Origin: Haliotis rufescens
Lineage: Eukaryota
Reading direction: 5' to 3'
Assembly: GCF_023055435.1 (NCBI RefSeq)
Contig: NW_025963779.1
Span: forward strand, 14,632,001 to 14,696,000
DNA length: 64,000 bases
Shown: one piece after another, positions 649 through 63,400 of the stretch
Position numbering within the stretch: position 1 is the stretch's first letter
How the letters are laid out: each line of letters opens with the position of its first letter
Program-made: the position numbers and the translations under genes
The notes under the pieces: model-generated
What the model was told of the DNA's origin: nothing
The model's database searches: none
Seen by the model: the letters and a program-made list of their open reading frames with translations, nothing else

Positions 649-2492
649 GGTTCATATTTGATAGGATACCCTTCTGAGGTAAGGAGCTTCTTTTCAGTCG
701 TTGCAGTTAGCCCACCGCATTGTGTAGCTGTTATGTAAATACAAAAGAAGATAAAAGAGCTGATGTAAATAACATACCCTTATCATAGGACTACGTATCA
801 TTTACATTGTAAAAAAACCGGTAACAGTAAACCAAAAGTTGATAATTAGATATGCGACAATTTTACTTGTGAACAAAGCAACCATGTTTTTACGTTTTGA
901 TTGACAATGATGCTGCAGTGAGCGCAAATCAGCTTACTTTTTATAAGAAATCAGGTTATCACAAAAACCTATATTCACAGTCTCTTAAGCAACGAGGAAA
1001 AGAAATTTCTTTGGCTCCCACTTCAGAGAGAACATTGTATGTTTCGAGAAGTGACCGAATAGATATCCTGTCTCTAACATTAATCACAGATCCCCTCTCG
1101 AACCGAATAAAATATTGCCCCATTACATATATTGCTATAAACATAATGATGGTATGTAGAAAAGACTTGTTTATTTGTCATCGCGGTGTCATCACCGTAT
1201 TGTCAGCGTCGCCTCCATGAAGGTGTTTTGATTTCCAGTAACTGATACATATGTCCGCTGCCGATCAGACCGTGTTCTTTATGCGGAACAATAAGGTGGT
1301 CAGACTATAAATTGTTTGAATATTTTGAAATATATATTTCTCGATTATGTGTTGCAGTTGTGTATCACTTTGTACTTGATTGTGTAATTAAGGGGGAAAT
1401 AATTATTTTTCTGTAAAGTTATTTAGTTCATATAATTAATTACCCCTTTCCTGTATGTAATACTTTGAAAAATAGTATCTTAATATTGAAGGAATTTAAT
1501 ATTTAAAAGCAACATCCGCTTTTATGGAGATATTTACATATAAGTATAATCTAAGTTGAATGAATAAGCAGAGTTAAATATCGCTAAGTGGCATGTTTAT
1601 ATTAAAAAACTGCAAGTCATCATTGCACCTTCTTCCATTCAGGAATCCCAAACCATTGCATTAAATATAACCAGATGATTGTTATAATTTGCATACCGAA
1701 CCTTTGTCTGCTCACACATAGGGAATAAAAGCGACAAAACTATTCTACAATCATTGCCAAAAGGGGGTTCCATTGAACGATTTCGACTCTGTTATAAGCA
1801 TGACAATATGCTCGTGTGAGGATGAACGTTTCAACTCGTCACAAGCATATGTACAGTCAAGTATTTGAGTAAGAAGGCGTTCGGGCGTACACGAAGGGGA
1901 ACATCGCCTTGACAGTGGTATTTAACAACTAATCTATGTTGTAGGTTTCATCACAGTAGGAAAATGGTCGCATGTTGTATTTCTGCAGGAATATTGTACA
2001 ATATGATGTGTTTGATTTCATATTGAAATTATTACTTTCAGTGAATGGGACGTGAACATTATAATATGGAACGTAACAATACTTCATATTGACGATAGTT
2101 GTGAGAGAATTTACTCAATTTAAAAAATCCAAAATGTTTGGCCACAGCGAGGCACCACAACATATTGTGCTAGGCACGGTACAACTGGAATGAGGGAGGG
2201 CCGTATTCCTCCTTGTGGGTGACCTGCTTGGCAATTTCGGACGGGAAAACTNNNNNNNNNNNNNNNNNNNNNNNNNNNNNNNNNNNNNNNNNNNNNNNNN
2301 NNNNNNNNNNNNNNNNNNNNNNNNNNNNNNNNNNNNNNNNNNNNNNNNNNNNNNNNNNNNNNNNNNNNNNNNNNNNNNNNNNNNNNNNNNNNNNNNNNNN
2401 NNNNNNNNNNNNNNNNNNNNNNCTGACGTTAATGGGAGGTTGAGGAAACCCAGCATAGAGGTGAACACGAACCGCCAGTAATCTCGGCCCAT
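649..2492 (-). CDS. Gene A: 5' part of inverted paralog (exon 1 2492-2423 signal peptide; exon 2 727-649 CUB1a); presumably continues left of the window
   Basis: [23 protein letters not shown]; exon 2 [27 protein letters not shown], 79 nt with intact cag/gtaagt sites; the exon 1 donor is hidden by the N gap. Confidence 0.8.
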
Positions 2493-5089
2493 GGTAACAG
2501 GTGTGGGTCCAGCAGTATTCTGTATCAAGTGGGCTGCGCGTTTGCTTTTAGCCAGGACGTCTTGCGAAATTCGCTTTGTAAATGCGGGATAGGCGTGTTG
2601 CTTTAGGCCTTTAGGTCTTTTTTTTCATAAACACCTGAGCTGATAACGTTCAATGTCTGCCTTGCACCAGTCCTTGTACCCTGACGCGATCCTGCTTGTA
2701 CAATCAGGTGTAGAGCGAGGCGGGGCCTAATTTTCATTATCATAAAATATTTATTGAGGATTTAATGAATGCAGTGTGTAAACATACGGATAGATATTGG
2801 TGTGGCTATCTATTGACAGCCTACGTCTTTAACACGGCACTTGGAACCACTAAGACTGGGAATTGTCTACAGCAAACCAGGGAGTCTATATATAGACTCT
2901 ATCAGTGAACATATTGAGTCCGCCATCTTGGAATAGATATGTGGGTGGCGTTCTTATACATTTGCATAGGAGCTGGAATTTGACTGATGACCTTGTCTTT
3001 CTTACAGACCCCAGGTCATATATACAGTATCAAAACAGGCACCCGGATATCATATTCACAACCTACCCAGCTTTCACAGCCTATACACATCCCATTATTA
3101 TTATTATTATTATTATTATTTTAAGATTAAAAACAAAATGCAGCAAAGAGGGTTTGGGTGATAGAGGTTTTTTCGCCGGACTACCTTGCTATAGGAAGTC
3201 TTAACCAGACAATCCAGTCACACGATAAAGCATTTACTGACAATATGTTCACTTTAAATTACTTCAAATGGCGACGTTGCAGGGAATGTTTATAAAATGG
3301 TGCAAAGATGGTGCGTGGTGTCTCGTATCTGAATAAATCTACTTATATGCTCATGCATATACTTATGTAGTGGTTTGATAAATGTCACTTGACACTGGTC
3401 GATCATATCAAATGGCATATTGTACTTTGTTCACAACACATACATGTATGGAGCGACGCCCTGATAAGTGTGGCCACGCGGTTAAAGTCGATAACAATTT
3501 GAAGTGCATTACTACTACAAAACTGATTATGACATACGCATTTGCACATATGTCTCAATTCCCGTGTAGTGTATATGAAAACCTACTATTAAATATGGGT
3601 CTTTCCGTGGGTGACATGTGCTAAGTGATATAACAGTAGAACCTCAAATATTAGAAGTCAAACACGTTTTACGAATTCTGTACGGGGTATTACAATCAGA
3701 CAGACGGCCATGAAGACAGCTAAATATCTTGTAATTGTTGGAAATTAATGTGTAATGTAATTAATTGTCGTCAGTGCATCCAAGTTTCCGACACCTTGAC
3801 ATACCCTTTTAACTGCATGTTTGGTCACGTGGCCACAATGTTATAACTGATGACTTAGCTACCTGTATTGTGATATGTTTTGATTATGCAAATATATCTT
3901 TGCCGATTTTCCCAGTTTTGCCCTGTTTAGTATGATACCAGGATCAGGTTATTATACTCAGTCACACATGTCACATAACATATTTCACATATTGTCTATT
4001 AAACTGTAAACAAGGTTTAGACAAATAAACTTTGCGTTTTCTCTAGATATTTAATGCTTTTATGAATGTGTGGGGCGGTAGTTGAAGCATTATTCTGTCG
4101 CGCTAAATTGGATTTCATGTCCCATATGAGTACAATGTAAACGTGTAATCTGGTGCATCTACATGTAGACGTATTCTGTCGATATATTGCTGGCATACGT
4201 AATAACGCAGTGTTTATCCATGTCATGACAATGAAACAAAACACAGCATGACACACAGTTTCTACATTATGTTTAGAATGATCAGTTCAGTGTGGCAAAA
4301 ATAACACAATATACATGTATGATGTGAACAACTCTGAAGCGAAAATAACATATACTGATAAAAGTTAAATGTGCTAGTAAATATTGTCAGTTTGTGTTAA
4401 TTAATGAACCAGGTTTGATTGTTCTGACATTTGGTNNNNNNNNNNNNNNNNNNNNNNNNNNNNNNNNNNNNNNNNNNNNNNNNNNNNNNNNNNNNNNNNN
4501 NNNNNNNNNNNNNNNNNNNNNNNNNNNNNNNNNNNNNNNNNNNNNNNNNNNNNNNNNNNNNNNNNNNNNNNNNNNNNNACAGGCGATAACAAACTCCCAC
4601 AACATGGAGAGAGGAATTTTGAGGGGCTTTCTAATGTACCACCTTACCTTGAAGCATTGTTTGGGTGCAGGGAATGCTCGAAAATGGGTGATGTGATTTT
4701 CCAACGATTAATGAACACTTGAGGGAACATTGTGGCACGAATGTAATATTTTAAAGCCTTAATATTTTTATTTTAAATATCTTTAAAAAAATCCCATATT
4801 CTCACAAGAAGGTTATATGATGTAGGATCCAACTATATATACCCCGTCAAAAACAAATGCAAAGGTAAGTCAATTGTTCACCTGAAAAAAACCCACGGGA
4901 ACACATGGTACAAGTCAGAATAAGGAATTGCATTGGACATAATGTTTGTCACTGATGCGTCAAATTGTCCTCCAGGTCGTTACAGCGCATTCCACGAAGG
5001 TGTTCTTTCAGTTCATGAAACAGGTGGAAGTCACTTGGTCCAGGTCTGGCGAGTAAGGAGGGTGAGGAAGCTCTTCGAACCCACACTGG

Positions 5090-6864
5090 GTTATTTTAGA
5101 CCAATCGCACGAACAAGTTGTTTGGCAGAAGTATTTGAAAAATGTATCCATGAACATGTGTTTAACTTCTTCAATGACAACAGAATTCTGAGCAATCTCC
5201 AGTCAGGCTTTATACCAGGCGATTCCACAAGCTACCAATTATAAGATCTGTATAATTTATTTCAAAGGCTCTAGACAATGGAACAGAAGTAAGGGCAGTG
5301 TTTTGTGACATTAGCAAGGCCTTTGATAAAGTTTGGCATGAAGGATTACTTTATAAGTTATCTTCATGTGGAATTCGAGGAAAATTGTTGAAATGGTGTG
5401 ACAGTTATCTATCAAACAGAATACAAAAAGTGGTTATTAATGGTAAAGAATCAAGGTTAAAATCTATCACGGCAGGTATTCGACAGGGATCAGTCCGAGG
5501 ACCATTATTATTTTTTATCTCTATAAATGACCTGGTTGATACGTCACTTTATATTATTGTCGATGATCCTAACACAGCAGCGATTAATTTAAATGTTGAT
5601 CTAGGAAGGATATCCGTATGGGCGAATAAATGGCAAGTCACGTTTAATCAACACAAAACTGAAACCATAATGTTTTCAAGAAGAATTAATTCGAATAAAA
5701 CCTGTTCTCAAAATGAAAGATACTCCAATAACAGAGGTCTCATCGCACAAACACCTAGGGCTAAATTTACAGCAAGATGGCTACTGGTCAAATCATATAG
5801 ATAATATGGTAGATAAAGTAATGATTAACTGCTTTAGAACTTTCAAATACCGCCTGTCCAGGAAAACGTTATAGAATATATATTGGTATTGGAAAGGCTA
5901 AATGTTGACGCACTGAGAACAATATGTAGAGCTACTCGTGGTACCAACCACGAGTCTCTATACTCTGAAACTAACCTTACACCCTTATCCAAAAGACGGC
6001 AATCTCATAAATTAAAAACATTTTACAAAATGGTTAAGAAGTTGGCCCCTGAATATCTATGTAATCTTGTGCCTCCTAATGTCTCAGCGGGCGCACGTTA
6101 CAATTTAAGAACTTCTTCACAGCTACAGACTGTAAATGCTAGAACAGTTAACTATCACAAATCATTTTTACCCGACACAGTGCAAATGTGGAATGAATTA
6201 CTGGAAAATGTTCAGTCAAAATATACTGTAAATGACTTCACTAAATGTATCACCACGACAGAAAATCCTAAGATATTTAGTTTTAACTTAGACTATGGTA
6301 CCCGTTTCTGTCAAATTATCCATTGCAGCCTCAGATTAGGATGCAGTGATTTAAATGCACACAAATATCATAGACATATTCATGATTCTACTACCTGCTT
6401 CTGTGGATATCATTATGAGGATCCTACACATTACTTCTTTTCATGTCGCAACTACTGCAATCTTCGGAACAATATGTACTACTATATAAAGGGATATGAC
6501 TTGGATTCAGTTTTATATGGAAATGCTACAACATCTACTGATACTAACCTTGCTATTGTACAATCTGTCCATTTGTTCATTGCAAAATCTAAAAGATTAA
6601 AAATCTTAATATGTCTTCTAAACGATTACATCGATCTAATAGTTGTTTGTATGTGTGATACGCTGGTATGCTGTTTGTTTATGTACCGATATATGTATGT
6701 GTGCATTTATGTATTTGTGAGTGACTTGTATATCATCATAATATTTGCAACAGTAGGTACAATTAATCTAAATCTATTATCTTATGTACAATTTACTCTC
6801 ATTAATTGTTAAATGTCCCTTGTAGGGAGGGGTGTTTAAATAGGTTGAACCTGTTCACCGATCC
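5090..6864 (+). mobile_element. 5'-truncated, degenerate non-LTR retrotransposon (CR1/L2-group) RT C-terminal half and 3' UTR
   Basis: YFRPIARTSCLAEVFEKCI, QSGFIPGDST, FCDISKAFDKVWHEGLLYKL, GIRQGSVRGPLLF..INDL (catalytic FADD segment deleted), C-terminal CFCG..ED..HYFFSC; frameshifts. Confidence 0.9.
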
Positions 6865-6979
6865 CATTCCTTTTTCATGGAACAGGACAATCTTAAAGAA
6901 GTAAAAAGCGACGTTTCGGTATCGATACTTATACTGTTGCCAAGCAAGATTGTCCTGTTCCATGAAAAAGGAATGGGAT
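6861..6979 (-). mobile_element. Fold-back stub at the palindrome centre, Penelope-like (degenerate hammerhead motif in the loop)
   Basis: Perfect 34-bp inverted arms 6861-6894 and 6946-6979; the loop read on - is ...ttggcaac agtat aagtatcg atacc GAAACGTCGC, resembling the stubs at 9028-9177 and 22813-22892. Confidence 0.55.
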
Positions 6980-7039
6980 ACATTTTTCAAATACTTCTCC
7001 CAAACAACTTGTTCGTGCGATTGGTCTAAAATAACCCAA

Positions 7040-7215
7040 TGTGGGTTCGAGAGCTTCCTCACCCTCCTTACTCGCCAGACCTGGCACCAAGTGACTTCCA
7101 CCTGTTTCATGAACTGAAAGAACACCTTCGTGGAATGCGCTGTAACGACGTGGAGGACAATTCCAAATTTGACGCATCAGTGACAAACATTATGTCCAAT
7201 GCAATTCCCTATTCT
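7040..7215 (+). mobile_element. mariner transposase C-terminal relic (mirror copy at ~4915-5088 on -)
   Basis: ELPHPPYSPDLAPSDFHLFHELKEHLRG carries the mariner YSPDLAPxD motif; interrupted by the LINE. Confidence 0.85.
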
Positions 7216-9027
7216 GACTTGTACCATGTGTTCCCGTGGTTTTTTTTCAGGTGAACAATTGACTTACCTTTGCATTTGTTTTTGACGGGATGTATATAGT
7301 TGGATCCTACATCATATAATCTTCTTGTGAGAATATGGGATTTTTTTAAAGATATTTAAAATAAAAATATTAATGCTTTAAAATATTACATTCGTGCCAC
7401 AATGTTCCCTCAAGTGTTCATTAATCGTTGGAATATCACATCACCCATTTTCGAGCATTCCCTGCACCCAAACAATGCTTCAAGGTAAGGTGGTACATTA
7501 GAAAGCCCCTCAAAATTCCTCTCTCCATGTTGTGGGAGTTTGTTATCGCCTGTGNNNNNNNNNNNNNNNNNNNNNNNNNNNNNNNNNNNNNNNNNNNNNN
7601 NNNNNNNNNNNNNNNNNNNNNNNNNNNNNNNNNNNNNNNNNNNNNNNNNNNNNNNNNNNNNNNNNNNNNNNNNNNNNNNNNNNNNNNNNNNNNNNNNNNN
7701 NNNNNNNNNNNNNNNNNNNNNNNNNNNNNNNNNNNNNNNNNNNNNNNNNNNNNNNNNNNNNNNNNNNNNNNNNNNNNNNNNNNNNNNNNNNNNNNNNNNN
7801 NNNNNNNNNNNNNNNNNNNNNNNNNNNNNNNNNNNNNNNNNNNNNNNNNNNNNNNNNNNNNNNNNNNACCAAATGTCAGAACAAGCAAACCTGGTTCTTT
7901 AATTAACACAAACTGACAATATTTACTAGCACATTTAACTTTTATCAGTATATGTTATTTTCGCTTCAGAGTTGTTCACATCATACATGTATATTGTGTT
8001 ATTTTTGCCACACTGAACTGATCATTCTAAACATAATGTAGAAACTGTGTGTCATGCTGTGATTTGTTTCATTGTCATGATATGGATAAACACTGCGTTA
8101 TTACGTATGCCAGCAATATATCGACAGAATACGTCTACATGTAGATGCACCAGATTACACGTTTACATTGTACTGATATGGGACATAAAATCCAATTTAG
8201 CGCGACAGAATAATGCTTCAACTACCGCCCCACACATTCATAAAAGCATTCAATATCTAGAGAAAACGCAAAGTTTATTTGTCTAACCCTTGTTTACAGT
8301 TTAATAGACAATATGTGAAATATGTTATGTGAGATGTGTGACTGAGTATAATAACCTGATCCTGGTATCATACTAACAGGGCAAAACGGGGAAAATCGTA
8401 TTTGCATAATCAAAACATATCACAATACAGGTAGCTAAGTCATCAGTTATAACATTGTGGCCACGTGACCAAACATGCAGTTAAAAGGGTATGTCAAGGT
8501 GTAGGAAACCATGGATGCATTGACGATAATTAATTACATTACACATTAATTTCCAACGATTACAAGCTGTCTTCATGGCCGTCTGTCTGATTGTAATACC
8601 CCGTACAGAATGCGAAAAACGTGTTTGACTTCTAATATTTGAGGATCTACTAACACAAGGTGTCACCCACGGAAAGACCCATATTTAATAGTAGGTTTTC
8701 ATATACACTACACGGGAATTGAGGACATATGTGCAGATGCGTATGTAATAATCAGTTTTGTAGTAGTAATGCACTTCAAATTGTTGTCGACTTTAACCGC
8801 GTGGCCACACTTATCAGGGTGTCGCTCCATACATGTGTGTGTTGTGAACAAAGTACAATATGCCATTTGATATGATCGACCAGTGTCAAGTGACATTTAT
8901 CAAACCACTGCATAAGTATATGCAAGAGCATATAAGTAGATTTATTCAAGACACGAGACACCACGCAAATTAATAATAAATCCAACTTTCATAACTCCTT
9001 TGACAGGCATTTAGAAGTTGAAGTACA

Positions 9028-9177
9028 AAGTAAGGATAAGAATTTATGGATGAACAACTTCTTAATTACAATTAAGAGCGACGTTTCGGTGTAGGTTCGT
9101 CGTAGGTGTAGTGAAACGTCGCTCTTAATTGTAAATAAATAAAGAAGTTGTTCATCCATAAATTCTTTTCCTTACTT
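9028..9177. mobile_element. Inverted (tail-to-tail) Penelope-like stub
   Basis: ~60-bp inverted arms each with GAAACGTCGC followed by an AT-rich tail (AATAAA on the right arm); tccaactttcat is repeated at 8981-8992 and 9177-9188. Confidence 0.6.
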
Positions 9178-10298
9178 CCAACTTTCATGTAAAAAAAGAA
9201 TATTTAATGAGAGGATTATTGCAGCAGGAATATTTTACCAACAGGTGTTTACATGTATTTATCAAACATTACAATTTATCAATTCCTTCACACTGTAGCA
9301 TTACAGTAAAGATTGTACATTTACATGTATGAAGAGTATGGCCGCGGTGTTATAGTTCCATAAAACCTTTAATTAGTACCACAGAACAACAAAATAGTTT
9401 TAGTAGGAATCCGCGAACTTATCCGCTGATTATTCGCAGTTTTACTGCAGAACACGATAACAAACTTGTACGTTGTTGTGTAATGTCGGCGCTTTGATAT
9501 CTTTGCAAAGCATTTTAGACGGTGTCACACGATAGTGTGTGTTAGGCCTCTATTTATTGTGGAGGGTTGTTATAGGCTGCGTTCAAACTTATAGTAGGGC
9601 TCCCTACTTCATTGCAAGAACAAATTAAACCCGACAGCAGGCAATGTCAAAAGGGTTACACAACTTTACAATTGCTTACTGATTTGGGCGAATTGAGTTG
9701 TCGGGTAGACGTTGCTGTATTCTTTCGTTGATTTATATGCTCGTCTAGTAACATCGTCATTAAAGGGGTATAACCTGCTGTAAAATATCAGGATTTTCAG
9801 TGATCCATTCATATTTATTTAATCACGATTTTACCTTTCACTTAATTTTTGTGTGTCAGATACTCGAGACGTTGATGTTATAGATTTACATACATACAGT
9901 GTAAAATATGATCTTTGCACCATTTTATAAACATTCCCCGCAACGTCGCCATTTGAAGTAATTTAAAGTGAACATATTGTCAGTAAATGCTTTATCGTGT
10001 GACTAGATTGTCTGGTTAAGACTTCCTATAGCAAGGTAGTCCGGCGAAAAAACATCTATCACCCAAACCCTCTTTGCTGCATTTTGTTTTTAATCTTTAC
10101 ATAATAATAATAATAATAATAATAATAATTGGATGTGTATAGGCTGTGAAAGCTGGGTAGGGTGTGAATATGAAACCCGGGTGCCTGTTTTAATACTGTA
10201 TATATGACCTGGGGTCTGTAAGAAAGACAAGGTCTTCAGTCAAAACCCAGCTCCCATGCAAATGTATAAGAACGCCACCCACATACATGTATCTATTC

Positions 10299-10347
10299 CA
10301 AGATGGCGGACTCAATATGTTCACTGAGAGAGTCTATATATAGACTC
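10299..10347 (+). promoter_or_regulatory. Candidate promoter motifs conserved in all three paralogs: YY1-like CAAGATGGCGG and an 18-bp palindrome GAGTCTATATATAGACTC
   Basis: About 400-440 bp upstream of each ATG; copies at 2882-2930 (-) and 51911-51958 (one mismatch in the palindrome). Conservation may merely reflect recent duplication. Confidence 0.3.
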
Positions 10348-10738
10348 CCTGGTTTGCTGAAGACAGTTCCCAGTCTTAGTGGTTCCAAGTGCTGTGTTAA
10401 AGACGTAGGCTGTTACTAGATAGCCACACCAATATCTATCCGTATGTTTACACACTGCATTCATTAAATCCTCAATAAATATTTTATGATAATGAAAATT
10501 AGGCCCCGCCTCGCTCTACACCTGATTGTACGAGCAGGATCGCGCCAGGGTACAATAAAGGACTGGTGCAAGGCAGACATTGAACGTTATCAGCTCAGGT
10601 GTTTATGAAAAAAGGACCTAAAGGCCTAAAAAAAACGCCTATCCCGTATTTACAAAGCGAATTTCGCAAGAAGTTCTGGCTGAAAGCACACGCGCAGCTA
10701 ACGTGATACAGACCACTGCAGGACCAACTCCTGTCACC

Positions 10739-10808
10739 ATGGGCCGAGATTACTGGCCGTTCGTGCTCACCTGTGTGCTGGGTTTCCTCAACCTTCCATT
10801 AACGACAG
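10739..10808 (+). CDS. Gene B exon 1, signal peptide [23 protein letters not shown]
   Basis: gtcaccATGG Kozak context, hydrophobic core, donor G|gtaatc (phase 1); conserved in all three paralogs. Confidence 0.85.
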
Positions 10809-13800
10809 GTAATCTCATAATTATGATCACTATATGCCTTCTAGGACAACCTGTGTAATATGTACCGGCATGTAACCGTCTGACCGCCCATGGCGGGCTA
10901 GGTACAGGGTTTACTGGATGTACAGTCTTCGACAAACGAATAGTGAGTCTGTGGGATATTTATAAATATGTAGGTCAGGCGTAGGAGTATTGATCAATGG
11001 ATGATGTGATGCGTACAACTATGGCATCTTTTTTATGCAGGGATCTGCCTAGTGAGCGACTATAGCAGGGGATGAAACTCCCAAAAATTTCAGCCAGACC
11101 ACAGGACTGGTTAGCTGAAATACTTGCCCACTATGTTTCTCAGGATCATTTAATCAAAAATATGAAAACTGATTGCTTGTAGCATAAGCGCATCGCTAAA
11201 TGTTAGGTTGTCTAAAAGCTAACGGGGTTTCTTTTTGGTTACATTTTATCATTCATCTTTACATGTGGATTAATGCTTATCATCGGGAAATATTTAGAAT
11301 ATTTTCACCTTGAAATATAACCCGACCGTCGGGCAGGGGGATTTGAAAAACTGGCAGCCCGAGCTGAAATCAACCCGTCTCGGACGGTCGGGCAGGCAGG
11401 TATTTCGGACGCTGCTATAGTGGATTATAGTATATAGTGTGTACCGTAGTTGATGCAATTTATCCCTCTTCTACTCTAAAGCTTTAATTACAATGTATAG
11501 AATATAGTATGTTTTTTATGTATATATAATATGTCTAAGCTGTTTATATAGTGTACGCTTTAGCGTTATTTAAAGTAGTGTATGCATCAGTGTATAGATT
11601 TGTTAAGGGAAACAGTTATTGGGAAACGGGGAGAAGAGGAGAGGGGATGAAGATTTTTTGTTGGAGTCTTTATTTAACTGCTTCAAAACATCCAGTTTAT
11701 TTTTTACAACACATGTTTTCAACTGTATAGTTGTTGGCAAAATTATTTTTAGAAAATGCCCATAAATTATATANNNNNNNNNNNNNNNNNNNNNNNNNNN
11801 NNNNNNNNNNNNNNNNNNNNNNNNNNNNNNNNNNNNNNNNNNNNNNNNNNNNNNNNNNNNNNNNNNNNNNNNNNNNNNNNNNNNNNNNNNNNNNNNNNNN
11901 NNNNNNNNNNNNNNNATTAAATGTATCATCGAGTATCAGTAAGAAACTAGAAATAACTGCCTTTGTTCTGAAAATCTCACCAAGTTTCAGCTTTCGCCTC
12001 TTCCTTTGTGGAATGAGGTTTCACATTTGTAAAATGATCTCTCTTATCTGTGCTCTCACCCCCTGCAGTTTTCCCGTCCAATATTGCCAAGCAGGTCACC
12101 CACAAGGAGGAATACGGCCCTCCCTCATTCCAGTTGTACCGTGCCTAGCACAATATGTTGTGGTGCCTTGCAGTGGCCAAACATTTTGGATTTTTAAAAT
12201 TCAGTAAATTCTCTCACAACTATCGTCAATATGAAGTATGGTAACGTTCCATATTATAATGTTCACGTCCCATTCACTGAAAGTAATAATTTCAATATGA
12301 AACCAAACACATCATATTGTACAATGTTCCCGCAGAAATACAACATGCGTCCATTTTCCTACTGTGATGAAACCTACAACATAGATTAGTTGTTTAATAC
12401 CTCTGTCAAGGCGATGTTCCCCTTCATGTACGCCCGAAAGCCTTCTTACTCAAATACTTGATTGTACATATGCTTGTGACGAGTTGAAACGTTCATCCTC
12501 ACACGAGCATATTGTCATGCTTATAACAGAGTCGAAATCGTACAATGGTCCCCCCTTTTGGCAATGATTGTAAAATAGTTTTGTCGCTTTTATTCCCTAT
12601 GTGTGAGCAGACAAAGGTTCGGTATGCAACTTATAACAATCATCTTGTTATATTTAATGCAATGATTTGGGATTCCTGAATGGAAGAAGGTGCAATGATG
12701 ACTTGCAGGTTTTTTAATATAAACATGCCAATTAGCGATATTTAACTCTGCTTATTCATTCAACTTAGATTATACTTATATGTAAATATCTCCATAAAAG
12801 CGGATGTTGCTTTTAAATATTAAATTCCTTCAATATTAAGATACTATTTTTCAAAGTATTACATACAGGAAAGGGATAATTAATTATATGAACTAAATAA
12901 CTTTACAGTAAACTAATTAACTCTATTTATTACACAATCAAGTACAAAATGATACACAACTGCAACACATAATCGAGAAATATATATTTCAAAATATTCA
13001 AACAATTTATAGTTTGATGTACTATGCCCGGACAACCAATAAGCAGCTGTTAATGGGATTGTTATGCCCTTTAGTTAGTTTGTGGGAATTTATTTAACAA
13101 TATATTCCTCGATTGATATCTAACACTTGATGTGAACAGGTAAATTGGATAACTTGATCCGTTAATTAATTGTAGCCGGTGTAACCGATAGGGAAGGGCA
13201 TGCTTACCCTTTTCGGGAACAACTGGTATCATCACTGTTTCATAGATCCATTCAATATTTACCACTATTTTGCCTCCCCCCTCCCCCAATGGAATGTGTT
13301 TGGTCCGATAATCGAGACTGTTTATTCTCTTCCTTTGACGTTCTATATTCATATTGTGGGACCGTGGACATGGTAGAGGATTTCATTATTGTCGCAATAA
13401 TATGTTTTCACAATCTGTTACCCATGTGATCAGAAACAAGAGAGAATTTATTATTGAATAGGTAAACTAGTGTACATGCCACGTCAACTCAACACTAGAG
13501 AATAATCAGTCTCGATAATCTACCGAAACAGATTCCACTGGGCGTAAGAGGAAAAATAGTGGTGAAATTTATATGTATGAGTCACTGGAAATCAAAACAC
13601 CTTCATGGAGGCGACGCTGACAATACGGTGATGAAACCGCGATGACAAATAAACAAGTCTATTCTAAATACCATCATTATGTTTATAGCAATATATGTAA
13701 TGGGGCAATATTTTATGCGGTCACTTCTCGAAACATACAATGTTCTCTCTGAAGTTGGAGCCAAAGAAATTTCTTTTCCTCGTTGCTTTTTGTAATTGAC

Positions 13801-42300: not shown

Positions 42301-42301
42301 T

Positions 42302-48869: not shown

Positions 48870-49409
48870 GCTTAGCAGAGGTACCACTGTACACGACCAA
48901 CCCACACAACAACACAAGGCCAGGGTGAATAAGCAGTCAGTTTATTAGACAGCCACGGAACCTTACAAATAATCAGTCAAATAGAAATGTTTACAATCAA
49001 TTATTAGAGCATGTTGACAATCAGTTGTAGAAGTACATATATGTGAAGAACATTAGGTGAACATGATATAGAATCATTACATGAGATACATGCTATATTA
49101 TTTACGATACATATTCTAAGGTACTCAACGTAATACAACAGTTTACATATGATTGAATATAGTATACCCGACACACTCTAACTAATACATTACCCGAGCG
49201 GGCATTCACACCAGATACATTCTATTCAGCCACAATACATATTCCAAAAGGTAAACAGCGCAATACATTGGCATAATCTATACACAGAAGTAGTACAATG
49301 GGAATATCTAAGATACACACACAAGTATGACACCTTCAGTTACCAATTAACTTGTAGGTATTGCCAAGGATAATAGCATATAGTTAAGATTTAACATAGT
49401 TACTGTACA
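48870..49409 (-). mobile_element. Possible LTR (48888-49409) with adjacent PBS-like TGGTACC
   Basis: TGTACA...TGTACA termini, AATAAA plus GT-rich tract near the 3' end on -, TGG one nt beyond; not present in the gene B upstream homolog. Confidence 0.4.
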
Positions 49410-50485: not shown

Positions 50486-50656
50486 GGAGATAAACAAACT
50501 GTGTTTTCAACGTAGAGCTAGGTTACCTGTAGATTTAACCGCGCTAAATTGAATTTGGACCCGAACGTGCAGCGTGAGGTTTCAAATGTTTAATTTAGCG
50601 CGGTTAAATCTACAGGAAACCTAGCTCTACATTGAAAACACAATATGTTTATCTCC
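50486..50656. repeat. Fold-back hairpin / MITE, ~65-bp arms
   Basis: ggagataaaca...gtagagctaggttacctgtagatttaaccgcgctaaatt / aatttagcgcggttaaatctacaggaaacctagctctac...tgtttatctcc. Confidence 0.85.
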
Positions 50657-53101: not shown

Positions 53102-53191
53102 CATACATACATACATACATACATACATACATACATACATACATACATACATACATACATACATACATACATACATACATACATACATACA
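53102..53191. repeat. (CATA)n microsatellite
   Basis: About 22 perfect units. Confidence 0.98.
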
Positions 53192-53329
53192 TGCTTATGA
53201 TATAGTCGAAATCATATAATGGACTCTGCTTTACGCAGGTATTTCCTATGATTATGGAAACGTTTTGTCGCTTTCATTCCCTACATGTCAGCAAACAATT
53301 ACATTTAGTACTAACGACTAAATGACTTT

Positions 53330-54452
53330 ATCGCGCGTATCCAAACCATGGGCTAATTACGTCTGTAACCCAATCACCCCCCGTAACCCAATCACCCCGG
53401 GCCACCACTCGGCACCGTGCCCGGGGAATAATCCCGCGCAAGCATCATCCCGCCCTTTGTTAGTCCGTCATTCGCGAGCAACCCTTCCCCAAGTACACAC
53501 GTGTGTCACTGTATCTAATCGCTTTCCCACCCACCCACCCACTCAGCTTGCCACTCCCTTTTCTTTCCTTTTCAGCCTGACGTGTCTTCTTCACCTGGAA
53601 TGCTAATCACTTCTTTTTCAGCGTTTATTCTATTACAAGTACCAGCAGAGCGGATTGTATATATGTAAATAAACCTGTACATATGTAAAATAGGTTTTCA
53701 GAGCGCTTGTATATATGTACATACTTTTAAATGATTCTGATATATGTAAATAAACATGACTTCTTAATAGCTGTATATATGTATATATGCAATACCTGTC
53801 TCAACAATAAACTGTGTCGAGGTGTGCGGGGTTCTTGTGGGCTACACTGCTAGTAACAAATTAACTTGCTTCCAAATTAATACTCGTGCTTAAGGCTACC
53901 TGCTTTTCAGCGGGAACCTTTCCGGGGTTACCTGCTTCTCAGTGGGAACCTTGTCTTTCCCGACTTTTCAGCCGGGGAATCGTAAAATAACATACGTTGG
54001 GGCAAACAATTGCCACGTATATGGGCCCGGCGGCGGAAGTCGTCTTGTCAAGCGGTAGCTGACAGTTAGGTCCGCGGGGGGGCCGCACAATGGTTTTGCT
54101 AATGGGGCCGGGCAGTGTGATCTGCTTTGGCCGGCTGCCTGGGGCCGGGCAGCGGTAGTCTGACTTAGGCCAGCAGCGTGGAGCTGCTTTTGGCAGCGTG
54201 GGAGTTGCCAAGCAATGGTAGCGTTTAAATATGCTACCGTGGGGGGCGGACAGCGGTAGCAGTCTCAGGCCAGCAGCGCTAGCTGCAATCGCCGTTGGCC
54301 ACGCGCGTGGCCATGGCAACGGTAGCATTTTGGTATACACAATTAGCAGCTAAGTAGCCCACTGGTACCTGCACACCCTCGGCCATTTAACCCAACCTCA
54401 TCTTCTGTTTTTATTATAGGCACGGGCACCCACGGCTCGGTGGCCCGTGCCT
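53330..54452. mobile_element. GC-rich insertion specific to gene C intron 1, ending in a GC hairpin (unclassified; Helitron/Helentron-like end possible)
   Basis: Sharp GC rise at 53330-53560 and 53900-54450; ttttattata ggcacgggc...gcccgtgcc hairpin at ~54419-54451; no counterpart in gene B. Confidence 0.35.
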
Positions 54453-57400
54453 CTCCTTGGCATATCGCGGGATAAAGGTTCAGTATGCCGATTATCCGCC
54501 GAAACAGATTCCATTGGACGTAAATGGAAACATAGTGGTCAAAGTGGGTCACTGGAAATCTAAACACCTTTATGCAGGCGACGCCGAATATACGGTGGAT
54601 GCGATGACATATGAACAAGTCTATTCTACATAGCAGCATTATATTTAGAGCGATATTTAGAAAGGGGCCATACATTATTCGGTTCGGGAGGGGATCTGTG
54701 ATTAATGTTAGAGACAGGATATCTATTCGGTCACTTCCCGAAACATGCAATGTTCTTTCTGAAGTGGAAGACAAAGACATTTCTCTTTCTCTTTGCTTTT
54801 TTTAATTGACACGGGTATGGATAAATAACTTAACGTTTTGGAGAATGTGCATATATGTTTCTATCAACGCGGGGGAATCCAGATTTCTTATGGAACAAAA
54901 GCTGATTTGAGCTCACTTTAGCATCATTGTCAATCAAAACGTAAAAACATGTATGTGGTTGCTATGTTCACAAGTAAAATTGCCGCATATCTAATTATCA
55001 ACTTTTGGTTGATAGTTATCGTTATTTACAATGTAAATGATGGTAATCCTATGATAAGGTACTTTTATTTACATCAGCACTTTTATCTTATTTTGTATTT
55101 ACATAACAGCTAACTGCGACGACTGAAAAGAAGCTCCTTACCTCAGAAGGGTATCCTATCAAATATGAACCGTAAGTATATATTTTTAATGAATCAGTTT
55201 GCACACTGTATAGCTATGGAATACTAGAAGGGACATTTCGCGTTTACGCCTTTACAAAACCAAGCACATAATGACCGACTTAACCAAAGCGTGACATCGC
55301 AATAACGAGACAGCGCTTTCATTTGAGTAATTGCATAATATGAATAACACAGTTATTTCACCAAAACACTCTAAATTACTAGTTCGAAATACAAAAGGGG
55401 TTAATATTTGTGTCCTCAGACTAAATTGGTTAGTTACTTAATCAGAGCATGATTATATACTGTAGTATCTTGAAGGAGATGTTCTATCACCCTTAAAACT
55501 TAGGAAGATAGTATGGCTATCCTCGAGCTCATGACTGTATGACAAGAAGGGTGTCTTTTACTGTCCAGTTTTCAACTTTCGCTTCATGTCGCAATATCCC
55601 AACAGCTCAAGCCTTTGGTGTCATTTCACATTTCACACTTTTGGAGGTGCAATCGAGCACGCTTCTTCTAAGAAGAGTTTCAAGCGACTCTTGCTACTGT
55701 TTGATCAAAATTACAACAGTAAAGGCCTCAGTAAAGCTATGGCTGCTATGGCAGGCACGTGGAGCAGATTTCCAAATTTACGTATCAATGACCAAAATTA
55801 TGTCCAATGCAATTTCCTGTGTTGACTTTTACCAGAGACCATATAATAGATGGTCTCTGGCTTTTACGCAACATATAAACTCAATAAATAATATTCAATA
55901 CATGTACGTTCATTAAAGTGATTCTCTGTATCGCTGCCCACCTCTCGTTGGCGGCATGGTCATTTCATAACACACATACATGTAAATAGTGGATGTGTAA
56001 TTCAAATTCGGATTGGTTGCGAAAAATGCGAACTTCACACGACAAACATAATAACAAACTTTTGCATCGCAGATTACTAACTAAGCATGTAGGAAATATA
56101 ACATACATAATTATGTATTAGTTGCATACTATACAAATAAAAGTTTTTTTCAACCAAGCTATCAATATTCAATAAATATTGACTTTATGGCAATTCAAAT
56201 CGGTCTCACACAGAAAACGTCACACTATATTCCATTTATTTGTCTATTCCACTTGTTTGTGAGTACTAACTAATACTAGTAGTTAATATTTCAGTTCACA
56301 AACATGCTCGTGGAGTCTTCAGGCATCTGACGCTTCCAAGAATGTAATTCTAGAAACAGTGGACATGATGATACAACCCTCAACTGGTTGTGTTGATGAT
56401 TCAGTCAGCATACATGACGGTAAGATCAGTATACCCCGTGGGGATCCCGGGATCCTACAAGTAGTACGCTGGTCGTAAGAGGTGACCAAATGGGTCGGGT
56501 GGTTAGGCTCGGTGTCCTCGTACCATGATGGCGTGGTTTGTGGCTCACAATATCGACCACTGTCTTGTCTGGTCATGACCCGACTATCTACATACCGCCG
56601 TCAGACAGCTGGAGATTACTACACACATATGTCTTAAAGATTAGATGTCTCGTATATATCTAAACACGAGCGTAAATGACACAATTAGTATGTGCCAGAA
56701 ACTGACGCCGGTACATTTCGCTAAATTGACAAACTTACTGATAAAATTGTACATTATACATAAATGAACTGTTGTGTCTTTGTACCATTACCCAAGTACA
56801 GTGAATGACTCAGCGATTGTTTATCAACAATTTAACCTTCATATTACGTCGGCTGTAAACAATGATATTTTAATTATTTTATGTGTGTATGGGTAAGTCA
56901 AAATCATAGAAGACAACAACGGAGTATATACAGTGAGTGTTTAAGAAGTGTTATTATATAACTAGGCAATCAGTAGACTAGTATAAATGCCATATCCCAA
57001 TAACATGTTCAAATGCCTTTACGCTACAAGCTCTAACTGTAGCCAATATACATTCTTTACAGTTCTTTTATGCTCACTGGACAAATCACTCGCCTCTGTT
57101 GATTCCGGAAGTTTGAAACCAATAACCATTGCAGATTCTACTTCCTGAATCATCAGATTCGAGTGATATATCTGATATTTAATTTCTTTATAATTCTGTA
57201 TAATAACCTACAGTTGCGTCAGTTTTACTTGCACAAACTGCACGCTCAAAATGGCCAGTGAATTCCTTGTCAAGAACAATCTGCAACAACAATAGCGTGG
57301 CATCATTGTATGTATGTATTCCCCCTATGCTTCCATGTGTTATGCGTTGAAAGTAACATTATTGATATTTATATATACATATTATATATGTTAACTACAG

Positions 57401-60400
57401 GTGACTCCAACTCTTCCACTAGGCTACACACGTTATGTCGAGACACTCGTGTGTTTGTGACCTCATCTGGACGGAACATGTACCTTGAATTTCGTTCCAA
57501 CAGTATTCTTGAGACGAGAGGCTTCCAGTTCCGATACTACCAGGGAGACAGTATGTAATTCCAAAGTCATTATCAGCCATTAAATATACGCTGCTCAATT
57601 GTTCAGAATATCACGTCAGGTCTTATGGCAAACGTTCACCCATGTATGCATACAGTTAACTCTTGACATATTGCACAGTTTCGACTATAGCTGTCCAACT
57701 TTGAATCCTTGAACAAAATATGTTATTGTTCGTGACTTGGGAATGCACGAAATGTATGGTTGAGTGCATATTTCATTAATAGGTACCTACCGTTCCATTG
57801 ACGATCCTAGGGGATTATTCAATCAAATTATTACGCCAGTACTTCCTTGTACCTGTTTGGAAATATGAAGATGTTTTCATGATCACAAAACCCCTTGTGG
57901 ATTTAAGTGAGAACATAGATCCCCAACTACCCATGTGTTCATTCATCCAATTGTAATTGATTCGAAGCATACAACTCCAAAAGAGCCCTATTTATGGTTC
58001 AAGCTTCAAGAGCTCTGGTGTTTATTAGTGTTGAAAACCCAAATAGGCTTGCCAAAGATTTGAACGCAATGTGATTGTTCTTCGCGAAGTAAAGTGAATG
58101 GTCATTAAAATGGTCAGTTGTGCAGTCCATGTATGAATAAAGTTGGTAATGCCACAGTAACTGTAACAGTTTAATTGTTATATATCTAATATACCATATG
58201 TACTTATGCGTATATATTGAATTATAATCTCGTCATCAGTAGAGTTAATCAGGAAAGTACAAGTCGATAAATGCGTCGTGAAGGTGAATTATTATTTTCC
58301 TCAGAAGCTAGGCCTTGCACGTTCACGTTTACTGCTACTCGGGATGTGAAGACCTTCAACTCACCTGGCTACCCCATTGCATACTTCAAGTAGGTTGTAC
58401 TGTCCGAGGACCAAGCATGATTCATACTTGCTTTTATTGCAGTTGCATTCGTCCATTCATTAGCTTGGTGCCTTCAATGATACACTTGTTAAAGTTCTGT
58501 TCTGGTATATATTTTGATAATTATATGTCTCCAATTACTTCCCCGTTCTGATCAATATAACCTCGTTTGTATGACACGTTGCTGGGCAAAAACAGGTCAA
58601 GTCAACACTCATGTCTGTACAAAAAGATGTTTGTCCTTGGTAGATAACCAGTTTATCAATGAACTAACTCTTATGACGCTGTGAACTGATACCGATGGCA
58701 CAAAATGTACAATAACTCAACGTACATAGAATGAAAATGTGTACAACATGAACACAGTTGTATAGTTACGTATATTCAATGAGTGATTTAATGTAGTGCA
58801 TACATACATTGACGTGATCATTTATTCTAATTTAACGTTGAATTATTATACAGCCATTTAGATTAGAACTTTTGTATTTCAGAATATCATATTATTTGTT
58901 TTCCAGCGGTTTATCCTGTGAATATTCAATTCAAGCGGCCGATGCATCATATAGTCTGCAATTGGAGTTTACAGACGTTGATGTTCAATCATCTCAAACT
59001 TGTCGTGACGACAACATCAGCGTGGCAAATATAAGTAATGAATTACAATATTACCTGAACTTAACTTTTACCGGGTACAGAACTACATGTAGTCTAACCC
59101 TCCTAATTCAGTGTGGAGATACGTGTGTCTAATTGTGTCAGGTCCCGCTGGTTACCGACTGATTCGCCCTGATTGTGATCCGTGGTTTGTCGGCACCATC
59201 GAGATTTTTACTTGCCTTTGTCACGGGTGCCGCCGGTGAGACAGGATAACCTTACCTAGTCGTGAACACCTGTATCATCACCACCTGACGTACAATGGAT
59301 TCTGCGTTTAGCAGATATTTCTTCTATGTGGTTCGTCGTTTTCCCCATCGTACATTTCCCACGCCATTGAATAACTGAAATATTGTCAAAGTTCCAAGTG
59401 GCAACAAAGGAGAAGTCATTAAAGTCGCTCATTGTATATATCATTAAAGTCGCTCAGAATATATCACTTATGGAATCTGGAACACTTATAGTAATACTAT
59501 ACAATCAAAGCAAACCCGATACATATGTTTGACTACAATGTGCCGACAATTGCAGCTATAGATATATTGGCTGTGTAACAACTGAGACACAAAGCACACT
59601 ATCCGATATATGCATAAGTCTATGTTGACTTAGTTTCAGGTGGAGATGACCCAGTTGCCACAATCTGTGGTATGCCGACCTCCTCTTATCAAGGAGGAAA
59701 CAACATGAAGGTCACATTCACCTCAGATGGGTCGAAGGTCAATAAAGGATTTTCAGTTGGATATCGGAGCGTCCCGAGTGAGACATTATTAATTCATTAG
59801 AGTAAATCATAGTTATCATGTTTTTTAAACGACACTTATGAGGGTTTTTTATATTAAAAAATGTGCCGTAAAAATGTCTTATCATTGCCATACCATAAAA
59901 TCATTAATTCTTATGAAACATTAGTTGTATTCATTATGCATTTTCTTTGAACACACTATGTCATTTAGAATGTGGTCTAATGTAACAAATGTTATTGGTG
60001 GCGTGAAACCTTCTGAGAAAAGTAACAATTATCTTACTTCCGTCCTGGATTCGAACCCATACTGCCAGACCGAGGCACCTAATCGCGGGCACACAAAGTC
60101 AGCGATGCTTTTTCTTGTTTATTTACTTGTTTTCCTTTTCCATAAATTACATTACATAAAGTACATGTTACCTGGTAAGTCTTTGGCATGGTACACCTGA
60201 AGAAAAAGAAACATTTCCAAAATTGGAAAGAACATGGACAAAATGACCTTTCCATCATTCAATCTGTGAAAATGTGTGCAAACTTCCAAAAGTAAAATTT
60301 AGAAATATCACCTTTCCGAGCTTTTGAATAGGGTCTTTTCCCTTATTACAATAGGAGGAAATGTTTGGAAAGAGATGTTACAGAAGGTGTTAACATTGTA

Positions 60401-63400
60401 CATAGCAATGGAAATCTATAATACATCACGTTTATTTGATATGCTTCAGAGGAAGAATGTTCAATACACGTGGAGGCCACAGATATGGACTCGTTTATCA
60501 TGTCCCCAGGGTACCCGAATCAGTACTTCAGGTAAATATTGTACAGGAACATTATTTCCCATGATCGTTTCTTGTCATGTTACCTTCTTTATAACACCTT
60601 CATACAAGCGTGGGGAATAATAATAAAACTTACATTTCGTGGTTCAACTTATAAGTGAAGGAACGTATGAATATTGTTTAACACCGCAGTCACATTAGTA
60701 TTCCAGCTATGTCGCGGCGGTATGTCATAAATGGAGTCTGGACCAACCCAATTAGTGCCAGAACCACCGGTCCCTCCTTAATTGATTCAAAAATACTTGT
60801 GGAAGGACCACAAACACTGTTAAGAATAATTTGCATGTGTTTAAATACTACTGTCTTACATTCTTTTGGAAATCTTCAGAAAATAGCCAATCTTCAGCCA
60901 AACGAAAACAAAAGAACATAATACATCTAACAAAAACGAAACGATGTGCTTCAAGAAAAATAAAATTGATAAATAAGATACTCTTACATGTGGTTACAGC
61001 TAAATCATAGTATAGGGTTTACAATGGTGCAGATGCTATGGTCTAGGGGAGATAATTCCAGAAGTGCATCAACATGGAAAAGATCAATCAGGAATATCCC
61101 AGTGTTGGTATAGGAAAAGAAATCATACGTAATTTTAACACGCAGCTATGTACACCGTCAACAAGATAGATACAGTTCTCAGTACATGTATGTCAGTTAC
61201 CATGGAACCTAGAATATACAAGGCGAGTTTATAACATTTGTAATTGGGGGACTATTTTCATCAGCATGAGCAACGACCAATCCTTAAACCAAGTCCCACA
61301 TTGCAACTGTATGATACCTATTTAAGTAACAAACCTGAGGTACCGATGGACAAAATGCATTCGGCCCTGGGGTTCCCAGGTGAATACTTACGGGAATATA
61401 GACGAAAGATTAATTTAGAGAAATGTGAAATTACTCTTTTCCGTAAATGGCATATGAATGTCCATGAGAATGAATACGAGTTCTTCTGGACGGATTATCT
61501 ACAGATAGATCAGTGGATGATTTACGCGATGGATGAAGAATAACATGTGGCGATACACCTCGATTCAATAAGTAGGATTCAAATTTTTCTGTTTATATAA
61601 AAATGTATAAAGGTCATATGCTACATGAATGAAGGATTTTATAGATCGGTGGATACATGTGGTGGTAACTTATCTTCCCTTATGTGAGTAAATGATTGAT
61701 CTTTAAACGTTTTATAGGCGTTCCCGCAACTAGGCCCTTTTATACCTTGCCCACGATAAAGGTTTTCTAAATTCCTATATAAATATTATAAAGTCGAGAA
61801 ACTGCCTCAAGCTATAATATAAGCAAGAATTACATTTTGAACTTCATGGCGAATGATAGTCCTAGAACATAATTGTCCAGCCAATGGGAAATCAATATTG
61901 AGAACTGTATGAGACGCCACCATTTTTATATTTTTAGCAATGCAGTAAATACTGAGCCACATTGTGAAGCTGATTACAAACTGTACGATTTGCAGAAATG
62001 TCGAGGTATGCACCATTAATTAATAAAAAGCTCGATGCCATAGAGATATTGTGTAAATGAAGCTTTGCTCCTCCAGCAACATGAACTGCCGCTGGACCAT
62101 CGTGGCGACGGATAACGATGCTACGGTCGAACTGGTTGCTGTCATCTCCGACATTGCCGACACTTCCCCATCTTGCAGCAGTGACAGAGTGTCTGTGACG
62201 GACTGTAAGCTTCTATGTTAATGACGTTAATGGATAATTAGATTTGATAAATTTAAATTTAAAACAATATTCAAGAAAATGTCAGTTCCGTAGGTGGTAA
62301 TATGAACATAAGAACATAAGATCAGTATCGGTTTTCTATTCAACGATGTCACTCAATGGTTGGCTGGGTACTTGCCGCGTTCTCAGGAGTTCGTAATTTT
62401 TGGCTAACTGTGACAAAACAAATGCACGATGCATAAAGACGAGAGAAACGAGGGATCTCGCAGTTTCGTTCTTCACACACATACACATATTCATTATATA
62501 CCGGATTTTGTGAATGCTAAAAAGAAGAAATGTGAAATGTGTTGAACTATGTTGAAAGCTTGGCACATGTACATGTGGCATTGTCTTCCCATGAACAGTT
62601 CAGCTGATGAACAGTGGGGTCATTTGGTTGAAACATTTTGGTCATGTCGAAAATTGTGACACACATATACGTGTAAACACGTTCCACCGGATTTCATGAA
62701 TGAAAAAAGTGCAACTGTCAAATGTGTGAAATGTATTAAACAAGTTTTTATTGTATTACCATCTTCAGCTGATATGACAGAACTGGGGATATTCTGTGGA
62801 ACGAACAAACCTACATATAATAGTACAGGACCAAACGTGACTGTTGTCTTCACGACTGATGGCACCAATCAGGCAACAGGATTTCGTCTGAAATACAAGC
62901 AGAAACGAGGTAAGTCGTTTTTCATGGGTTACACCACATTATTATAAGGTCTACTCCGTTCTGTTAGTGAGAAGAACAAGGAAAGAATGAGTAGAACGTG
63001 TTCAAGTTATCACAGACTGTATACATCCACTGCATTTCATCTGTTGAGAGATTCTTATGTATGTGAAAACAAGACACGATGGACAGCGCAAGTGCTCTAT
63101 GAAATCTCAATCAGATATGTTTGTAGAATGCTTTTGCAAGGTTCAAATGTATTTACTAAAACAATTTATAAAGTAATTAAGATTCCAATCATCGTTGCCT
63201 GCATATTCGGACAATGGTGTACTCTTGCGATATTGTAAAGGAAAAACGAGTGCAGCAATGTGTCAAATGCAGGACTGGTTTCGCGTTATTTAATTTATAT
63301 ATTTGTATTAGAAATATAATACGATTTTGGTTTAAATGTCAGATTATTTCTTGTGCAAATGTGAACCAAGAGAACGTAGTTGCTAGTATAAGGGGTGGAG

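Follow-up and report, generated by a model that had tools for sequence, protein, structure and literature searches.

CUB-array proteins in described systems

Arrays of CUB domains are classic ligand-capture modules. The window considered here, 64,000 nucleotides of the abalone Haliotis rufescens (contig positions 14632001-14696000 of an assembly of 1.33 Gb in 615 contigs), contains part of a cluster of genes for such arrays, in which the complete gene B stands between parts of its paralogs A and C. Flanks of 140 kb on the left and 80 kb on the right were added, so that 284 kb was examined; positions outside the window are expressed in window coordinates, negative values lying to the left, and further copies (E, F and G) are found there. 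The cluster probably encodes type I membrane glycoproteins with a bare ectodomain of eight CUB domains, predicted from the sequence to act as ligand-binding receptors of the cell surface.

In PMC5368703, cubilin is described as having 8 EGF and 27 CUB domains and no membrane helix and as depending on amnionless. Its domains CUB5-8 (3KQ4) are the nearest solved structure to the abalone proteins (E = 2e-48). Both share the long tandem CUB array and, in some domains, residues of the presumed calcium site. Unlike cubilin, the abalone proteins have eight CUB domains, no EGF and a membrane helix of their own. Elsewhere in the genome, on contig C334 at 44.57-44.64 Mb, there is a run of about 65 kb of strong one-strand CUB exon matches; this cubilin-sized array is probably the true cubilin ortholog of H. 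rufescens.

SOL-1 of Caenorhabditis elegans is a type I protein that carries only four CUB domains outside the membrane and acts via this ectodomain with partner proteins (PMC9083331). Its layout of signal peptide (SP), CUB-only ectodomain, one helix and short tail recurs in the abalone proteins, except that the latter have eight domains instead of four. The preliminary description of this DNA had recognized no known match for an eight-domain CUB-only ectodomain on a transmembrane (TM) helix; SOL-1 is a studied precedent for a CUB-only ectodomain of this kind. However, SOL-1 is a conserved neuronal gene, whereas the abalone genes form a fast-turning tandem cluster, and the likeness noted here is one of architecture. 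CDCP1 is likewise a single-pass protein with CUB-type domains only outside the membrane, but it carries a long tyrosine-phosphorylated tail, while the abalone tail has 21 residues and no conserved motif. Pfam CDCP1 CUB matches were at or below cut-offs and overlapped those of PF00431.

Other CUB proteins combine CUB with partner domains: LDLa in the NETO, LEV-10 and LRP3-12 type, SRCR and ZP in DMBT1, Sushi in CSMD, astacin in tolloid, and FA58C or MAM in neuropilin. In the Pfam scans the RefSeq proteins of gene E and of the B/C model served as stand-ins for the joined B protein. Neither of them showed EGF, ZP, protease, LDLa, SRCR, Sushi, astacin, FA58C or MAM domains above cut-off, and only CUB was found, in line with the CUB-only ectodomain described earlier.

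The same architecture occurs in molluscs other than abalone. The cuttlefish (Acanthosepion/Sepia pharaonis) 'CUBN' cluster protein P0009, 1084 residues long, consists as here of an SP, eight CUB domains, a TM helix and a short tail (47 residues against 21 in abalone). It is collinear with the gene E protein over 995 residues at 28% identity (E = 2e-92), and the architecture is therefore old. A C-terminal membrane helix behind a CUB array is likewise found in many further mollusc proteins named 'cubilin-like'. Close relatives of the abalone sequences were found only in Haliotis by a word search with the RefSeq model: H. asinina (68% and 52%), H. rubra (52%) and, inside 90% clusters, H. cracherodii. 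Beyond this genus the identity does not exceed 33%. The expanding lineage-specific family proposed previously is thus confined to the recent burst of copies, which looks lineage-specific, and does not extend to the architecture, present in cuttlefish and other mollusc proteins. An HMMER search with exon 1c returned 133 proteins, the best of which was the H. rufescens RefSeq model itself; in a whole-genome Pfam CUB scan the exons of the cluster were too weak to enter the best 150 of 873 candidates.

No study of the abalone eight-CUB family was found in the literature under 'eight CUB domains' or cubilin plus Haliotis, nor was one found of any member of the molluscan SP + 8 CUB + TM family (abalone, cuttlefish). 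An abalone Iso-Seq paper mentions, without going further, duplicated 'cubilin-like' genes with many isoforms (PMC5368703).

Exon model of gene B

Exons were located with a CUB profile made from single-exon CUB domains of the same genome, after which AG/GT splice sites were chained by phase. For gene B this gave 26 AG/GT exons with an open frame of exactly 1035 codons plus the stop, in agreement with the complete 1035-residue gene described earlier (SP, eight CUB domains, TM helix and short tail). Each CUB domain is divided among three exons, a covering profile positions 1-23, b positions 24-66 and c positions 66-110, and the exon phases are uniform (a from 1 to 2, b from 2 to 1, c from 1 to 1). 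The first CUB profile missed the strongly diverged exons 6c and 7a, which were recovered by family-exon profiles and by their conservation in A and C. The parts of the gene are as follows.

10739-41753, + strand: gene B, complete, with SP, 8 CUB, TM and 21-residue tail (AG/GT chain; 3' junctions in RNA contigs)
10739-10808, + strand: SP exon, with start codon, phase-1 end and GT donor; identical by tblastn (100%) to the start of RefSeq model XP_048245301.1; also kept in A, C and E
14087-14165, + strand: exon 1a, first third of CUB1; AACAG acceptor, phase 1; residues 23-50 of XP_048245301.1 at 100%
15182-15306, + strand: exon 1b (Pfam CUB 20-67; junction scoring)
16568-16717, + strand: exon 1c, the most conserved exon of the family (Pfam CUB 67-110; 94% amino acid identity to the divergent gene F)
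17634-17718, + strand: exon 2a (CUB profile, junction chain)
18308-18435, + strand: exon 2b (Pfam CUB 23-63; junction chain)
18986-19123, + strand: exon 2c (CUB profile, junction chain)
19687-19768, + strand: exon 3a (CUB profile, junction chain)
21682-21809, + strand: exon 3b (CUB profile, junction chain, Pfam on RefSeq proteins)
22357-22497, + strand: exon 3c (Pfam CUB 59-110; junction chain)
23505-23589, + strand: exon 4a (CUB profile, junction chain)
24020-24141, + strand: exon 4b (Pfam CUB 23-88)
24382-24537, + strand: exon 4c (Pfam CUB 63-110)
24816-24897, + strand: exon 5a (CUB profile, junction chain)
26508-26638, + strand: exon 5b (CUB profile, junction chain)
29155-29331, + strand: exon 5c, a conversion patch, 1.1% from C (junction chain, copy comparison)
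30759-30849, + strand: exon 6a (CUB profile, junction chain)
32405-32538, + strand: exon 6b (CUB profile, junction chain)
33181-33324, + strand: exon 6c, a divergent CUB third (family-exon profile; kept in A and C)
34825-34906, + strand: exon 7a (family-exon profile; conservation)
36473-36603, + strand: exon 7b, at which RNA contigs begin or join exactly (joint 36603/37482)
37482-37616, + strand: exon 7c (RNA joints on both sides)
39319-39409, + strand: exon 8a (RNA joint 39409/39849)
39849-39967, + strand: exon 8b (RNA joint 39967/40265)
40265-40414, + strand: exon 8c (Pfam CUB 63-110; RNA joint 40414/41602)
41602-41753, + strand: last coding exon, with membrane helix (19 residues at hydropathy 2.89), the tail of 21 residues and the stop (RNA contigs)

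The first intron of B contains a run of N at 11774-11915. Both flanks of this run are collinear, in the same orientation, with the gap-free gene E, and RefSeq models splice the SP exon of B to exon 1a across it.

Another candidate for the SP exon was a hydrophobic ATG frame at 13930-14009, with a 45-nt intron to 14055 and a total of 1049 codons. Indels shift its phase between copies, and the RefSeq N-terminus lies instead at 10739-10807, followed by the acceptor at 14087; for both reasons it was dropped. A rescue of the frame of C by a phase-0 donor/acceptor pair depended on this rejected exon and was rejected as well. The 'GFEIRY' frame at 36039-36122 and the frames at 33685-33852 and 35754-35861, considered as exons 6c/7a, were discarded as lacking conservation in A or C.

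Encoded protein

The B protein starts with a hydrophobic signal peptide, followed by the eight CUB domains, a hydrophobic helix and a basic tail of 21 residues. Open frames of the + strand match Pfam CUB PF00431 above cut-off, each covering about one third of the domain; of ten exon open frames taken from B and C, nine exceed the cut-off of 21.4 bits, with scores of 22.5-36.3. Eight CUB stretches each were found in the RefSeq proteins of E (P0147; 446 bits) and of the B/C model (P0001; 431 bits). The helix of the last exon has a hydropathy of 2.89-3.06 with basic residues next to it, and no conserved motif was found in the tail.

Domains CUB1-7 of B have four Cys each. CUB8 has two and is devoid of the first pair, as are some known CUB domains. 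The B protein contains 14 N-glycosylation sequons. In an alignment with canonical CUB domains of the same genome, the full Glu/Asp/Asp triad at the presumed calcium-site positions was present only in CUB4 and CUB8, while CUB2 and CUB3 have the two Asp.

Transcription and splicing

Three probable RNA runs, originating from three studies, and the DNA run X1 were compared with 36400-42390. Of the words sampled from 23400-25000, a fraction of 0.17-0.19 occurs in the probable RNA runs, close to the proportion of exon sequence there. Four RNA joints, 36603/37482, 39409/39849, 39967/40265 and 40414/41602, are all of the GT..AG type and lie exactly at the predicted coordinates. All four are present in two RNA runs, and the small run X17 has three of them, without 39967/40265. 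A fifth joint, 37616/39319, is implied by contig pieces when a 3-nt repeat at the junction is allowed for. None of these five joints occurred in the DNA run X1. Of the 25 junctions predicted in the preliminary description, RNA therefore confirms four at the 3' end and implies a fifth among them. The joint 40414/41602 means that CUB8 is truly spliced to the membrane-helix exon, and from 7b to the last exon the RNA contigs hold only the predicted exons.

The origin of the contigs was established from letters that vary between paralogs. The X15 contig matches gene E at every listed site, by which its origin from a polymorphic B allele was ruled out, and the X17 contigs belong to gene B. The X16 contig, which has another organism label, is the ortholog from a close relative. 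The gene-E contig extends 435 nt past the stop (to 42188 in B coordinates), so that the 3' untranslated region (UTR) of E is at least that long; the gene-B contig of X17 was followed for 66 nt past the stop. Both B and E are intact genes of 1035 codons that are transcribed and spliced as predicted.

RefSeq annotation

The genes had been described as hidden, but RefSeq already annotates them under the automatic name 'cubilin-like'. Model XP_046376086.2 is gene E, an intact gene of 1035 codons with which it agrees at 1034/1035 residues. XP_048245456.1 (920 residues) is gene A from exon 2a on and starts after the stop of A. In XP_048245272.1 and XP_048245301.1, which are isoforms X1 and X2, the B exons SP-3a or SP-1b are joined to C from exon 3b or 1c through TM, skipping up to about 40 kb. 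These two chimeric models stem from an annotation in which two genes were merged or from genuine read-through splicing, by which the frameshifted C would be rescued.

In practical terms, RefSeq fuses its models of B with those of C, and the intact B has no stand-alone protein among the RefSeq models found. Exons 3b-TM of B are in none of these models; exons 7b to TM are spliced in RNA contigs despite this absence. A predicted E isoform, XP_046376088.2 (P0220, 993 residues), ends a few residues past CUB8 without the membrane-helix exon and would be a secreted eight-CUB form.

Organization of the cluster

Exon-wise tblastn gave the order F, E, G, inverted block (D', A), B, C and then D, with F, E and G on the + strand and F, E, G, A, B and C within 230 kb. 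In a genome-wide search the membrane-helix exon had five copies, all of them on the same contig at 14.526-14.725 Mb. Within the window, self-comparison revealed an inverted match of 39-5149 with 6976-14944 at 87-97% identity and a direct match of 7870-23410 with 47637-63746 at 71-85% identity. Together with the shared three-exon CUB pattern, these matches bear out the three paralogs of one exon architecture recognized earlier, and the limits then assigned also agree with the models, exon 1a of A ending at 649 and exon 3c of C at 62909. The following parts of gene A and its block fall within the window.

39-5149, - strand: window share of the gene-A inverted block, mirror of 6976-14944
2423-2492, - strand: SP exon of A, its donor abutting the N run 2252-2422
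649-727, - strand: exon 1a of A; the remaining 24 exons are left of the window, to -27021
5150-6975, no strand: asymmetric palindrome centre (5150-6894 in the block comparison), A-copy far-upstream sequence with a homolog upstream of E, absent from the B arm

Gene A lies on the - strand and extends from 2492 down to -27021, mostly left of the window. It keeps the lengths of all 26 exons and their splice sites; its one premature stop is codon 101, in the part of exon 1c that lies beyond the window. The inverted block with D' and A spans -38053 to about 6894. Gene C is on the + strand from 52349 to 93282, which is 29 kb past the right window edge, and has these parts in the window.

52349-52418, + strand: SP exon of C, conserved with the B SP exon
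55110-55171, + strand: exon 1a of C with a 17-bp deletion, by which the first Cys of CUB1 is lost and the frame shifted
56295-62909, + strand: exons 1b-3c of C, projected from B with AG/GT kept; used by XP_048245301.1
56295-56419, + strand: exon 1b (projection)
57401-57550, + strand: exon 1c (projection)
58305-58389, + strand: exon 2a (projection)
58907-59034, + strand: exon 2b (projection)
59640-59777, + strand: exon 2c (projection)
60450-60531, + strand: exon 3a (projection)
62077-62204, + strand: exon 3b (projection)
62769-62909, + strand: exon 3c (projection)

The rest of C, exons 4a to TM, continues beyond the right edge as far as 93282. The 17-bp deletion leads to a stop at codon 29, and the other 1007 codons are open. 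Gene G consists of exons SP to 5a only (+ strand, -49011 to -39920) and is C-like, with 2.5-5% mismatch to C; it ends in intron 5 at -38053, the exact start of the inverted block D'-A. Gene F is a divergent member with 45-94% identity per exon. The blocks E-G and B-C run collinearly, with 3-5% of positions mismatched. A (stop), C (frameshift) and G (5' half) are broken copies, and F is an old divergent member. With six loci, three of them broken, birth-and-death turnover is stronger than the preliminary description had claimed.

The introns of A, B and E differ from one another by 3.3-4.2%, and each of them differs from those of C by about 22%. As was stated before, A is young and inverted, and C is an older copy in direct orientation whose frame is shifted. 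The order of events given by the intron divergence is an old split of F, an old X/Y tandem duplication (about 22%) and a recent burst (3-4%) in which blocks were copied, one in inverted orientation.

Gene A and the inverted block might instead be an assembly artefact, namely an alternative haplotype placed head-to-head with B, in which case the true genes would be fewer. All four N runs found in the 284 kb are at most 6 kb from the palindrome centre and mirrored, and at places where A, C and E agree, B alleles from RNA and DNA depart from the reference, indicating high local polymorphism. On the other hand, the introns of A are closer to E (3.3%) than to B (4.2%), which is unexpected for a B allele. 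The N-free segment 4579-7554 spans the centre and both inner arm ends, and the downstream flank of A matches the flank of C and not that of B. With these observations the artefact appears improbable for A, while for C an assembly duplicate is excluded by the 22% divergence of its introns.

The N runs in the window are 2252-2422, 4436-4578, 7555-7867 and 11774-11915, none of the four being inside modelled exons. The first opens at the first intron base after the SP exon of A, which makes the first donor of A unreadable. The runs 4436-4578 and 7555-7867 occupy mirrored spots upstream of A and B.

Divergence, gene conversion and selection

Exon divergence among A, B and E is 3.5-4.5%, similar to that of the introns. 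The density of singletons within this trio is also about equal, at 5.6% in exons and 5.8% in introns, and the ratio of nonsynonymous to synonymous divergence (dN/dS) is 0.75-1.11 in all pairs. These values, along with the stop in A, the frameshift in C and the retention of only the 5' half in G, would be expected if the recent copies were redundant and drifting, with dN/dS of about 1 reflecting relaxed constraint and the cluster mostly decaying. Such general decay is nevertheless unlikely. B and E keep their frames of 1035 codons and are transcribed. The body of C has 1007 codons without a stop despite 187 exon differences from B, for which the neutral expectation is 7.2 stops on average and the probability of no stop is P = 0.0003; neutral drift alone does not fit. 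Exon length differences are all multiples of three except in exon 1a of C, the only exon with a frame-breaking indel. Fixed differences of C against the trio amount to 3.6% in exons and 19% in introns, so that the exons are about five times better conserved. The best reading is that the cluster is now diversifying or decaying.

Comparison of the copies shows that exon-sized patches have been exchanged between them. Exon 8b of A is 0.8% from C, with flanking introns 14-21% apart and the C base at 5/6 A-specific sites, and exon 5c of B shows a similarly small distance from C (1.1%). The dN/dS values are confounded by these conversion patches. The CUB7 exons (36473-37616) have the densest differences, both paralog against paralog and RNA/DNA alleles against the reference (4-8% per 130-nt exon). 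The CUB8 exons are identical between B and E.

Possible functions

The predicted receptor would be located at the cell surface and capture ligands through its CUB modules. The roles proposed earlier (immune, allorecognition, gamete or uptake) are candidates for it. Since the tail of 21 residues is devoid of a conserved motif, uptake or signalling would need a partner, as in the pairs cubilin/amnionless or SOL-1/NETO. The speed at which the proteins change and copies come and go suggests variable ligands.

Several points weigh against this reading or soften it. The signal peptide and the membrane helix were called by hydropathy alone, and the B junctions SP-1a through 7a-7b rest on RefSeq models and exon conservation. 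The Glu/Asp/Asp positions are those of the presumed calcium site of ligand-binding CUB domains (cubilin, C1r/C1s, MASP). The inverted placement of A was judged from the assembly sequence, and three of the six loci are broken. Finally, dN/dS of about 1, confounded by gene conversion, suits relaxed constraint equally as well as diversifying selection.

A synaptic role is a further alternative, in which the proteins would be auxiliary or clustering subunits of ionotropic neurotransmitter receptors similar to SOL-1 (four CUB domains and TM), LEV-10 and NETO. The type I layout of a bare CUB array with a short tail is shared with SOL-1 (PMC9083331). A NETO2 structure is among the sequence matches, and the collinear 8-CUB + TM protein of cuttlefish implies an old conserved role. 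Furthermore, a soluble E isoform is predicted by RefSeq, and soluble SOL-1 is partly functional. However, dN/dS of about 1, bursts of copying and broken copies are unusual for synaptic auxiliary subunits, and the tie to SOL-1 considered here is that of the CUB fold and the layout. A synaptic function is very doubtful here, and a surface receptor with ligands captured by the CUB array is preferred.

Pseudogene-templated conversion exists in other variable receptor families. By analogy, the broken A, C and G could serve as donor cassettes for exon-sized conversion into B and E, which would produce mosaic polymorphic CUB arrays and a germline diversification of the recognition receptor; this extension of the receptor model is speculative and rather unlikely. 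It is also possible that the open, headless body of C is expressed by splicing from the 5' exons of B, as the RefSeq chimeras depict.

Features that are rarely seen side by side at this resolution come together in the cluster: two genes that are intact and expressed, three copies that were broken recently, an inverted block duplication, exon-sized conversion patches, and a protein that changes as fast as silent sites do. Should the diversification be adaptive, the cluster would be a candidate locus for the recognition of pathogen, gamete or self, in an animal that is farmed and of concern for conservation. Otherwise it illustrates cleanly how genes are born and die.

Neighbouring gene and repeats

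Gene D at 100242-104048 is a different CUB gene. Its partial inverted copy D' at -36262 to -33960 has 87-93% identity to it, and the two flank the cluster. The spacer between B and C contains one large tandem array.

42978-43832, no strand: tandem array of a 34-bp unit (about 25 copies) or a 102-bp higher-order unit (about 8 copies), just past the B 3' UTR

Arrays homologous to it are present downstream of E and of A. The last B intron contains a 160-bp dispersed repeat at 41356-41516, with many copies in the neighbourhood at 73-92% identity. Its summed depth is 7,000-130,000 in the RNA runs and about 270,000-470,000 in the DNA run, and it occurs in RNA contigs too; it looks like an element of the short interspersed nuclear element (SINE) type. 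Another high-copy repeat, at 36800-36999 in intron 7b of B, has a depth of 458-96,000 and is related to 33543-33927 and 41941-42254. In intron 1 of C there is a (CATA)n microsatellite at 53102-53192, within the repetitive patch 52898-53273, and its location is about that of the N run 11774-11915 in the homologous intron of B.

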